This document shows positions 4,117 to 5,831 of a DNA stretch of 64,000 nt, piece after piece (the first letter of the stretch is position 1; each line of letters begins with the position of its first letter). The notes beneath the pieces are model-generated. The model was not told the DNA's origin and made no database searches. It worked only from the letters and a program-made list of their open reading frames with translations. The position numbers were made by a program, and so were the translations under genes. The DNA lies in the sequence record NC_031127.1; one strand, given 5' to 3'.

Positions 4117-4202
4117 GGCGGGTTACTCAAGCGGTCAACGAGAGCAGACTGTAAATCTGTTGCCTTCGGGCTTCGTAGGTTCAAATCCTTCACACGCCAC
4201 CA
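4117..4202 (+). tRNA. trnY: tRNA-Tyr (GTA), with stem mismatches
   Basis: Loop CTGTAAA, long variable arm, CCA end; G-A mismatch in the acceptor stem and T-T in the T stem. Confidence 0.88.
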
Positions 4203-4208
4203 AACAAT

Positions 4209-4428
4209 GGTACCTGTCACAGCAGCCCTTGAGGCTTACGCGATGATGACTGGTCGCCCATTTTACCGGGTAACACATTCCTGCCAGCGCGCTATTGCCG
4301 CGAAGGTTTGCCCCCGGTGTTGTGCGTTATTCGGGTCTACCCACCATCTGCGGATGGTGCGTTGATGTCTCGATATACGCCATAGGGACGCCTTGAGAAC
4401 TCCGTGAAATTCGGAGAGGTACCACCCA
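4209..4428 (+). ncRNA. ~218-nt tRNA-like RNA (acceptor stem + T-arm with large insert)
   Basis: GGTACCT/AGGTACC acceptor, CTCCG-TGAAATT-CGGAG arm, ends ACCCA; internal helices. Confidence 0.55.
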
Positions 4429-4495
4429 TTCTTGTGTTTCCTTATCCTGAAGACATTCCTAAGACAAATTCATTCATGGTCGAGGAAACACAGAA
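4429..4495 (+). ncRNA. hairpin with conserved 37-nt loop, copy A
   Basis: 13-bp stem TTCT(T)GTGTTTCCT/AGGAAACACAGAA; loop similar to 5579-5615. Confidence 0.55.
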
Positions 4496-4503
4496 CCTAT
4501 TCA

Positions 4504-4579
4504 GGTGCTATCGTCTAGTGGCCGAGGATACTACCCTGTCACGGTAGAGACCGGAGTTCGATTCTCCGTAGCACCGCCA
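4504..4579 (+). tRNA. trnD: tRNA-Asp (GTC)
   Basis: Cloverleaf, loop CTGTCAC, CCA. Confidence 0.95.
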
Positions 4580-4844: not shown

Positions 4845-5018
4845 GTTCTCTTGCTGTGGGAAATAGAAGCGAACGTAGAAACGCCGGTTAGCTCAAAGCT
4901 TAGAGCGTCTCATCTTCGGATGAGAAGGTTGGGGGCGCAACCCGAAATCCCTATCGGCAACGGCCTGCTTGTCAGGATTAGAAACATCTACGTGGATGGG
5001 TACTTCTACAGCAAGAAC
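4845..5018 (+). ncRNA. multibranch RNA enclosing a tRNA-like module (4883-4959)
   Basis: Outer stems GTTC..TTGCTGT/ACAGCAAGAAC and TAGAAG/CTTCTA; inner D-arm-like AGCTC..GAGC and an anticodon arm capped by cUUCGg. Confidence 0.5.
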
Positions 5019-5042
5019 AAAACAGTGGGAGCATTGTCCACT

Positions 5043-5151
5043 GTGACACCGGCAAAGGTTTCGACCTTGCGGGTTGGGCGGAAGCCCGATGTTCCCCCGA
5101 ACGCTGGCCTTCTGGCCAATACAGTGAAAGCTTACCCTTGCCGATGATCAC
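5043..5151 (+). ncRNA. multibranch structured RNA
   Basis: CGGCAA/TTGCCG and GGGT/ACCC close four tetraloop hairpins (TTCG, GGAA, CCCC, TTCT). Confidence 0.45.
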
Positions 5152-5224
5152 CTCTTCTGCTGCTGCCAACACACTGTATAACCAGAATCAGTCCTGCCTT
5201 AAATGGCAAGCGTTCACCCTTTAC

Positions 5225-5302
5225 GTTTCCTCAAGGCGGCTTGGGGTGTTATCTCTCGGCTCTGTTGGGTAACATCGTGGTTCAACTCCATGGGAAACAC
5301 CA
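5225..5302 (+). tRNA. aberrant tRNA-like RNA, anticodon unassignable
   Basis: Acceptor GTTTCCT/GGGAAAC + A + CCA, T-arm CGTGG-TTCAACT-CCATG; 4-nt D loop; 9-bp anticodon-position stem with a 14-nt loop. Confidence 0.55.
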
Positions 5303-5308
5303 AACAAT

Positions 5309-5400
5309 GGCTCCGTAGCTAAATCGGTAGAGGCAGACTTTAATTAGTTCTCCAACGATTTTATAATCGCGTGGTGTAGGTTCAAGTCCTACCGGAGCAA
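5309..5400 (+). pseudogene. degenerate type-II-like tRNA (possibly derived from Leu-TAA)
   Basis: GCTCCG/CGGAGC acceptor, GTAGG-TTCAAGT-CCTAC T-arm, long variable arm; 6-nt anticodon loop, no CCA. Confidence 0.5.
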
Positions 5401-5474
5401 GAGCACTGCTGTTAAGTTGGTTAACACCCGACCCATACTCGGATATTCGCACGTTCGATTCGTGCCAGTGCTCG
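5401..5474 (+). tRNA. atypical tRNA with CAT anticodon (Met or Ile2)
   Basis: GAGCACT/AGTGCTC acceptor, loop CCCATAC (C33 instead of U33), T-loop TTCGATT; CCA not encoded. Confidence 0.65.
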
Positions 5475-5560: not shown

Positions 5561-5566
5561 CATTTT

Positions 5567-5626
5567 GCATTGCCCGAGTCCCGAATGACATTCCGGAAAA
5601 ATATCATCCATGGTCACGGGCAGTGC
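5567..5626 (+). ncRNA. hairpin with conserved 37-nt loop, copy B
   Basis: 10-bp stem GCATTGCCCG/CGGGCAGTGC; loop similar to 4445-4481. Confidence 0.55.
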
Positions 5627-5831
5627 AGAACCAAAATCCCAGCCTTCGCAGAAAAAGCTTACCTGCATTAGCGGTCCCCTGCGGGGGTTGGGTACCACCT
5701 TTGTCCGTTTTGTTTTTTTCTTTCAATTGCCTGGCGGTATTGGTGGGAACAAAACGGGTAAAGCCCTAGCGGGGGAAAAGCCGTTAACAACAACAGAAGC
5801 AGTAAAAACAGAAGTAAAAGCAGGAGTAGTT

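Follow-up and report, generated by a model that had tools for sequence, protein, structure and literature searches.

A family of putative tRNA-shaped noncoding RNAs in the tRNA arrays of SPN3US-related jumbo phages

The window analysed here, a stretch of 64,000 nucleotides (nt) from sequence record NC_031127.1, corresponds to the first 64 kb of the Erwinia jumbo phage vB_EamM_Huxley (KX397368, 240,761 bp), with which it is identical in sequence. Positions 4209-4427 of its plus strand, lying within an array of tRNA genes, probably constitute a gene for a noncoding tRNA-shaped RNA, which would be matured by the tRNA pathway and persist as a stable mimic that does not decode. The element, 219 nt long according to the boundaries of the covariance model R1 described below, belongs to a family of 21 distinct members, 118-220 nt in length, identified in jumbo phages of Erwinia, Salmonella, Serratia and Pectobacterium and in uncultivated viral contigs. 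All the members have a common topology, comprising a 7-base-pair (bp) acceptor-like stem (P1), an arm (P2), a single U, a further arm (P3), a linker of 6-8 nt, a T-like arm with a 5-bp stem and a 7-nt loop, and a 3' tail of the form N-CC-(C/U), and this connectivity is that of the tRNA cloverleaf with its four-way junction.

The initial homologues were obtained with blastn, using the spacer between tRNA-Tyr and tRNA-Asp as query, in the form of short matches to the T-arm and the 3' strand of P1 in other phage genera; the loci concerned carry shorter elements (118-156 nt) whose ends, 5' GACACY pairing with 3' RGUGUC, are shared, as are the T-like arm and the tail. The search was extended by pattern scans of viral, metagenome and genome collections and by R1, a covariance model built from 15 sequences, which finds exactly one copy of the family in the window and gives no match on the genuine tRNAs of the window and of phage T4. 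The carriers are found in the genera Machinavirus (the Huxley group), Seoulvirus (SPAsTU and pEa_SNUABM_29), Erskinevirus (Stratton/phiEaH2 and Asesino), Wellingtonvirus (Kwan/Wellington and pEa_SNUABM_11) and Moabitevirus (Moabite, 2050HW and ParM-25) and among several uncultivated contigs of about 230-250 kb. There is one copy per phage, with the exception of Moabitevirus, whose carriers have two paralogs each. The second, divergent Moabitevirus paralog (L009:1717-1842 and L041:4031-4155) has the T-stem CCAGG/CCUGG and the P1 strands GACGCCU/GGGGCGUC, and in Moabite it lies under the minus-strand hypothetical coding sequence (CDS) CPT_Moabite_080, which is probably a misannotation. Caitlin, ChrisDB and pEt-SU were found to be without the element. 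The metagenome scan contributed one new long-form member, four more full-length matches being duplicates of known members. Three bacterial-genome matches to the exact T-arm pattern were rejected as probable chance occurrences, only the T-arm hairpin fitting R1 (18-21 bits), and their limitation to this hairpin gives no sign of a cellular origin. The family is confined so far to the SPN3US-related jumbo phages (Chimalliviridae), under which the genus Machinavirus of Huxley is placed in the NCBI taxonomy.

An earlier note on this DNA, made from the sequence without database searches, had proposed a tRNA mimic closed by the pairing of GGTACCT (4209-4215) with AGGTACC (4417-4423). The pairing is present at these coordinates, as is the T-arm that the note had described, in which CTCCG (4400-4404) and CGGAG (4412-4416) enclose TGAAATT (4405-4411) and which abuts AGGTACC, with ACCCA (4424-4428) directly 3' of the latter. 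The internal helices listed there, ACCGGG (4265-4270) with CCCGGT (4313-4318), the hairpin CACCATC (4342-4348)-TGCG-GATGGTG (4353-4359) and an AGCC/GGCT hairpin inside 4221-4241, are likewise found, and the minimum free energy fold of 4209-4428 contains exactly these helices. Folding z-scores of -2.48 and -4.16 were obtained for the element and the whole 301-nt spacer, respectively, and none of 100 shuffled sequences is as stable. The sequence GGTACC is self-complementary and two copies of it always pair; the terminal pairing in a single sequence is therefore weaker evidence than is apparent. The homologues settle the pairing as real, as their stems are non-palindromic (GACACY/RGTGTC), and the terminal pairing is kept among the 21 distinct members by compensatory changes.

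Homologue covariation, which the earlier note had named as a check, is seen in the terminal stem and the T-like arm across the five phage genera. RNAalifold on a plain MAFFT alignment recovered P1, P2, P3 and the T-arm, with eight compensatory pairs. In the 21-sequence R1 alignment, which was fitted to the structure and with which the MAFFT-based result and the raw sequences agree, standard pairs occupy 96.7% of the cells (21 core pairs in 21 sequences), a share that falls to 39-51% on shifting the 3' partners by 1-3 columns, and the observed pairing or covariation score is reached in none of 500 shuffles. Double compensatory changes occur in 14 of the 21 pairs, the terminal stem and the T-stem included. 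Thus, P1 changes on both sides in five of its seven pairs (GGUACC/GGUACC, GACACY/RGUGUC and GACGCC/GGCGUC), all four pairs at the base of P2 covary (GUCC/GGAC, GCAC/GUGC, UCCC/GGGA, GUUA/UAAC and others), and so do the three inner pairs of the T-stem (CUCCG/CGGAG, CUCAG/CUGAG, CUACG/CGUAG, CCACG/CGUGG and CCAGG/CCUGG). The U-G pairs at positions 6 and 7 of P1 would be A-C on the opposite strand, so that only a transcript of the plus strand can accommodate them.

P2 and P3 stand where a tRNA has its D and anticodon arms. The junction of the arms is also conserved. P2 starts directly after P1, with 0 nt between them, its 3' strand is preceded by an invariant GA (4245-4246), and at the base of P3 both strands follow the consensus GGC-A-GCC, which gives an internal mismatch that is likewise conserved. 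Among the members, the interior of P3 ranges from about 28 to 140 nt, and the P2 and P3 arms overall from about 20 to 140 nt. The Huxley lineage has an enlarged P3 with an additional 56-nt sub-domain (4264-4319), closed by ACCGGG/CCCGGU, which is absent in the short forms; a further sub-domain, 4324-4380 (GCGU/ACGC), contains the hairpin 4342-4359 and seems to be the counterpart of the P3 interior in the shorter forms. In a five-sequence consensus fold of this lineage, the hairpin undergoes compensatory changes (CACCAUC/GAUGGUG, CACGGUC/GACGGUG and CAUGCUC/GAGUGUG) and ACCGGG/CCCGGU has one G-C to G-U change. The single structured insert of about 190 nt visualised in the earlier note is thus to be replaced by two arms, P2 and P3, which complete a cloverleaf-type four-way junction, only about 60-90 nt of P3 being an expansion of the Huxley lineage. 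The T-like loop reads UG-N-R-AUU in all 21 members, with U1 and A5 of the T-loop pentaloop, which they close (PMC4810234), invariant. As a partner of T-loop positions 56/57, position 4244 was considered and rejected; it is correlated with them, as judged by eye, in the Machinavirus subset and fails in other lineages. The features of the element and of its immediate surroundings are given in Table 1.

Table 1. Features of the tRNA-like element and its flanks in the Tyr-Asp spacer of the window
Feature	Coordinates	Strand	Remarks
Leader/spacer AACAAU	4203-4208	+	between the CCA of tRNA-Tyr and G+1
P1, 5' strand (7 bp)	4209-4215	+	pairs with 4417-4423; 96.6% of cells paired
P2 arm	4216-4250	+	base GUCA 4216-4219 / UGAC 4247-4250; 93.8% of cells paired; top varies by lineage
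Single U linking P2 and P3	4251	+	equivalent of tRNA position 26; invariant alignment column
P3 arm	4252-4392	+	base 4252-4259 / 4385-4392; 95.9% of cells paired
Linker UUGAGAA	4393-4399	+	variable-loop equivalent; 6-8 nt in all members, mostly UUNAKAA
T-arm mimic CUCCG/CGGAG, loop UGAAAUU	4400-4416	+	100% of cells paired
P1, 3' strand	4417-4423	+	stacked on the T-stem, 0 nt between; 12-bp coaxial stack
3' tail ACCC	4424-4427	+	discriminator-like A, CC, then C in place of the A of CCA
Separate conserved hairpin module	4428-4503	+	stem 4434-4441 / 4484-4491; fills the spacer up to tRNA-Asp

The Tyr-Asp spacer is 92-93% identical in the phages pEa_SNUABM_43, _42, _10 and _6 and in the Salmonella phage pSal-SNUABM-04, and the adjoining tRNA-Asp is far more diverged in these phages than the spacer. 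In view of this pattern, it is hardly credible that the element is a tRNA gene in decay, interrupted by an insertion, or an inverted repeat due to chance. The two self-complementary GGTACC copies would indeed pair automatically and mosaic tRNA arrays do contain degenerate tRNA-like units, but decay or chance is contradicted by an element that is better conserved than its neighbouring tRNA, shows compensatory changes in each of its four helices across five genera, with non-palindromic stems in the homologues, and has an invariant loop different from that of tRNA.

The element is neither a canonical tRNA nor a transfer-messenger RNA (tmRNA) nor a protein gene. ARAGORN makes no tRNA or tmRNA call at 4209-4427, and the Rfam tRNA, tmRNA and YrlA models give no match on the element (the tRNA model RF00005 none even at E-values up to 10), in agreement with the earlier view that it is no typical tmRNA; the Rfam result says little by itself, since the RNAs rnaC (RNAC, species 1 RNA) and rnaD (RNAD, species 2 RNA) of phage T4 are absent from Rfam as well. 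With canonical tRNA (RF00005), the family shares the 7-bp acceptor stem, the 5-bp T-stem with G53-C61, the 7-nt T-loop with U54/A58, the single nucleotide between the second and third arms, the four-way junction and the placement and spacing in the array. It differs in having no anticodon arm, as P2 and P3 are without a conserved 7-nt anticodon loop, and no D-loop G18G19, in the 0 nt between P1 and P2, in a T-loop of UGNRAUU instead of UUCRANY (G55 and N56), in its length of 118-220 nt and in giving no score with the tRNA model. The likeness to the tRNA-like domain of tmRNA, itself an RNase P substrate with an optimal U(-1)/G(+1) context (PMC10731613), lies in the ends, which pair as a 7-bp acceptor stem and stack on a T-arm, and in the large structured region that they enclose; the element, however, has no tag open reading frame (ORF), no series of pseudoknots, no encoded CCA and no G3-U70 pair. 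The absence of the last, remarked upon in the earlier note, extends to the 21 members, in which pair 3:70 is C-G (15), U-A (5) or U-G (1). As for a protein gene, substitutions are distributed 11/9/7 over the codon phases without 3-periodicity, 1-nt indels occur, stops are present in all three plus frames and nearly all the minus frames of the element, and the only ORFs are short and unconserved.

It follows from the above that a chargeable relative of tRNA or tmRNA, which would be aminoacylated after CCA addition and act in translation or ribosome rescue, is very unlikely. The 7/5 acceptor/T stack, A73 in 19 of 21 members and CC at positions 74-75 make CCA repair plausible, and the member of 2050HW/ParM-25 encodes ACCA. 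However, besides the negative ARAGORN and Rfam results, there is neither a G3-U70 pair nor an anticodon loop nor a tag frame, the short forms measure only 118-125 nt, the T-loop is without U55 and C56, and A76 is missing from the gene in 20 of the 21 members, though it is encoded, as part of CCA, by all eight canonical tRNAs of the window.

A mimic matured along with tRNAs is better supported by the placement of the element. It lies between tRNA-Tyr (4117-4202) and tRNA-Asp (4504-4579), after which the array continues with Ile, Glu, Ser and others, all on the plus strand, and the Tyr-Asp spacer has no annotation in the GenBank record. Its start is 6 nt past the CCA of tRNA-Tyr (4200-4202). Similarly, 11 members start 6-7 nt after a tRNA CCA, the next tRNA lies 9 nt past P1 in four members, and the AACAAU spacer of the element is the same as at real tRNAs, P1 being preceded by ...ACAAU. 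Bacterial RNase P recognises a 12-bp stack of the acceptor and T stems, the T-loop, R73-C74-C75, which pairs with GGU of L15, and a cleavage site whose optimal form is A(-2)U(-1)/G(+1) (PMC10731613). In the family, the 7+5 bp, G1-C72, CC and A(-2) are present in 21/21 members, A73 in 19/21 (with G73 in one) and U(-1) in 18/21. From these determinants and the position in a tRNA slot, we infer co-transcription with the phage tRNAs and release at U4208/G4209.

In the pathway proposed, host RNase P would cut the common transcript between U4208 and G4209, a further RNase P cut at the next tRNA together with 3' trimming would leave ACC (4424-4426), or a point close to it, as the 3' terminus, to which an A could be added by the host CCA-adding enzyme, and the product would persist as a stable tRNA-shaped RNA. 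The earlier suggestion that RNase P and the CCA enzyme could mature a tRNA-like RNA here is supported, as far as sequence can support it, by covariation, the tRNA slot and the context of the cleavage site. The tails of the 21 members are ACCC (14), ACCU (4), GCCC (1), UCCC (1) and ACCA (1, in 2050HW/ParM-25). The two Cs read by RNase P are thus retained throughout, whereas the terminal A is, one member apart, not encoded. Such a tail would fit a 3' end that is trimmed to ACC and then receives an A, and would equally fit one that is not meant to be a charging substrate. A scan of the locus for sigma-70 promoters and terminators gave results at chance level only; the carrier phages, which are classified as Chimalliviridae, transcribe with their own multisubunit RNA polymerases.

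The same ends could serve as a processing handle only, a signal for punctuation or stabilisation like the t-elements of plant mitochondria, directing RNase P and 3' processing of the neighbouring tRNAs or mRNAs, with an excised RNA devoid of a function of its own. The ends of the element are optimal RNase P sites, the element of pEa_SNUABM_29 lies 7 nt after a protein-coding gene and not after a tRNA, and several other non-tRNA units of the arrays have similar acceptor/T ends. A handle would, however, need only P1 and the T-arm, yet P2, the single U, the base of P3 with its mismatch, the GA and the linker are kept across genera. The conservation of this junction, including the 0 nt between P1 and P2, indicates that a defined three-dimensional shape is selected beyond the bare needs of an RNase P handle. 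Moreover, the P3 expansion of the Huxley lineage is itself about 92% conserved, with compensatory changes, and the flanking tRNAs have RNase P sites of their own. A role as handle alone is thus considered unlikely.

The function suggested for the element is that of a stable tRNA mimic, unable to decode, which would most likely engage a factor recognising tRNAs by their acceptor/T-arm side and act as its decoy or platform. This is a best guess and the part of the interpretation held with the lowest confidence. Several observations weigh against the interpretation as a tRNA-pathway mimic. No specific partner or target is indicated by any of the present results. The terminal A of CCA is missing from the gene in 20 of the 21 members and the 3' end could be made differently. 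No D-loop partner was identified for the T-like loop, which, with G55 and N56 in place of U and C, leaves a tRNA-like elbow conjectural. As the phages use RNA polymerases of their own, the access of host RNase P to the precursor is assumed, though the same holds for the phage tRNAs. Lastly, the close Machinavirus relatives Caitlin and ChrisDB are without the element, which must therefore be dispensable. A more specific version, in which a non-decoding and non-chargeable decoy is made in quantity from the tRNA operon, is matured by the tRNA enzymes of the host and soaks up a host factor attacking or modifying the acceptor/T end of tRNAs, is a doubtful possibility. If it were true, the RNA might, for example, titrate a defence toxin acting on tRNA 3' ends and thereby protect phage translation, and the other acceptor/T-ended RNAs of the arrays would form a set of decoys, with T4 RNAC as the first known example.

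The variable lengths of the arms, the presence or absence among close relatives, the differing tRNA neighbours and the shared CCA-AACAAU junction indicate that the element behaves as an accessory cassette, gained and lost like phage tRNAs. In the relatives of Huxley that share the spacer, an extra tRNA-Gln and other units are inserted upstream. The tRNA arrays (loci L002-L010, L025-L027 and L040) are mosaics: through shuffling, gain and loss, close relatives differ in which tRNAs and tRNA-like units they have and in how these are ordered, while the CCA-AACAAU junction recurs between the units. This mosaicism and the recurring junction suggest cassette exchange by recombination at the spacers.

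Other structured units were also observed in the arrays. The hairpin module that follows the element in Huxley (Table 1) is not a part of the tRNA-like RNA, as elsewhere the next tRNA comes only 9 nt after the element. It recurs at 5561-5632 of the window (stem 5567-5576/5617-5626), after tRNA-Asn and overlapping the annotated start of gp20 at 5610, and, by itself, in Caitlin (L027:1490-1560), also after tRNA-Asn. Its stems, which covary between the copies, are formed around the conserved GACAUUCC...CCAUGGUC, followed by AGAACC, and as it has no U-tract, it is not an intrinsic terminator. The motif ACATTCC, regarded in the earlier note as part of a repeated loop motif, shows no enrichment in the window, with 10 matches where 9.3 would be expected; two of its copies, at 4453 and 5588, do fall in the two copies of this hairpin.

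A stretch of about 349 nt at 4871-5219 is almost invariant in the Machinavirus relatives, with a compensatory hairpin swap in SNUABM_43. In its fold, GAACGU and AGCGUUC form the closing stem, and there is a T-like hairpin of 4 bp (UGCC-UUAAAU-GGCA) as well as a tail ACCC; Rfam is negative. It overlaps the annotated CDS gp17 (4851-5147) and is probably not a protein gene but a further structured RNA with tRNA-like ends; L007, L018, L020 and Caitlin have short versions (about 90-105 nt) that end in the same way. Next to it, at about 5225-5302, an unannotated unit resembles a tRNA and has a canonical T-arm (CGUGG-UUCAACU-CCAUG); its closing stem measures 6 bp, it encodes ACCA, the usual AACAAU spacer comes next, and neither ARAGORN nor Rfam makes a call for it. 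The 92-nt 'tRNA-Ile(aat)' at 5309-5400 (31.4 bits) has a G1-A72 mismatch and no encoded CCA, and it stands back-to-back with an unannotated Rfam tRNA match at 5402-5473 (38.9 bits), which ARAGORN misses and which also encodes no CCA, both being noncanonical tRNA-like genes; in the corresponding position, Stratton and Asesino have 120-nt 'tRNA-Ile(aat)' calls. In pEa_SNUABM_10/_6, an 88-nt unit between tRNA-Gln and the element (L003:1190-1272, also L004 and L032) has pairing ends GGAAGUA/AUGCUUCC, a hairpin CCGG-UGCUAUA-CCGG and an encoded ACCA, and is thus a non-tRNA with tRNA-like ends. The annotated CDSs and the apparently empty spacers of these tRNA arrays therefore conceal several structured RNAs, and a covariance model of the family would improve the annotation of these phage genomes. 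The natural variation of the family separates the constrained parts (the junction, the UGNRAUU loop and the non-CCA tail) from the free ones (the tops and lengths of the arms), and its occurrence in nucleus-forming jumbo phages bears on their tRNA biology and RNA trafficking.

Among the known noncoding tRNA mimics, the bacterial Y RNAs of the YrlA type (RF02553), which act with the Ro60/Rsr protein, also occur in phages, and the YrlA of M. smegmatis is cut by RNase P and receives CCA (PMC4201824). An RNA of this type is nevertheless extremely improbable at the present locus. The Ro-binding stem of YrlA is formed by its ends, and its tRNA-like part, with conserved tRNA-like D- and T-loop nucleotides, lies internally; in the element, the ends form the acceptor stem instead, and none of these features, nor a link to Ro60, was found. 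The Rfam model gives no match on the element and only weak, sub-threshold ones on genuine tRNAs, 20 of the 21 members lack the Ro-binding motif GNCGAAN0-1G, and no Ro60 (TROVE) gene is annotated in the flanks of any locus, the flanks being the part of the genomes covered.

The closest analogue, though not a member of the same family, is the species 1 RNA (RNAC) of T4, which is cut from a tRNA precursor by host RNases, RNase P among them. It is 139 nt long and lies inside the tRNA cluster of the phage on the tRNA strand, and its predicted fold consists of a closing stem stacked on a 3' T-arm and two further arms, a topology of the cloverleaf type with no anticodon. Its T-arm CCGGG-UUCGAAU-CCCGG is followed by a 7-nt strand pairing with the 5' end, with two U-U mismatches. 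The two differ in that RNAC has the canonical T-loop UUCGAAU and a mismatched closing stem, whereas the present family has UGNRAUU, a clean 7-bp stem and the N-CC-(C/U) tail, and in their phages, which belong to the Straboviridae and the Chimalliviridae, respectively. No homology to T4 rnaC was detected with R1 (3.6 bits, E-value 0.8), and blastn from the element reaches no T-even phage. RNAC is a validated late RNA, which accumulates and is 'of yet unknown function' (PMC9697503). The novelty claimed for the element in the earlier note therefore holds for the family, which has no Rfam entry or annotation and no description in the literature searched (on phage tRNA-like RNAs, SPN3US-type phages and the carrier phages), and does not hold for the kind of RNA, the same architecture being known from RNAC. 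Stable tRNA-like RNAs in phage tRNA operons have been known since species 1 and 2 of T4, and the present family would be a second, independent example; the same architecture without detectable homology makes it a new family of an already known kind rather than a member of the T4 family.

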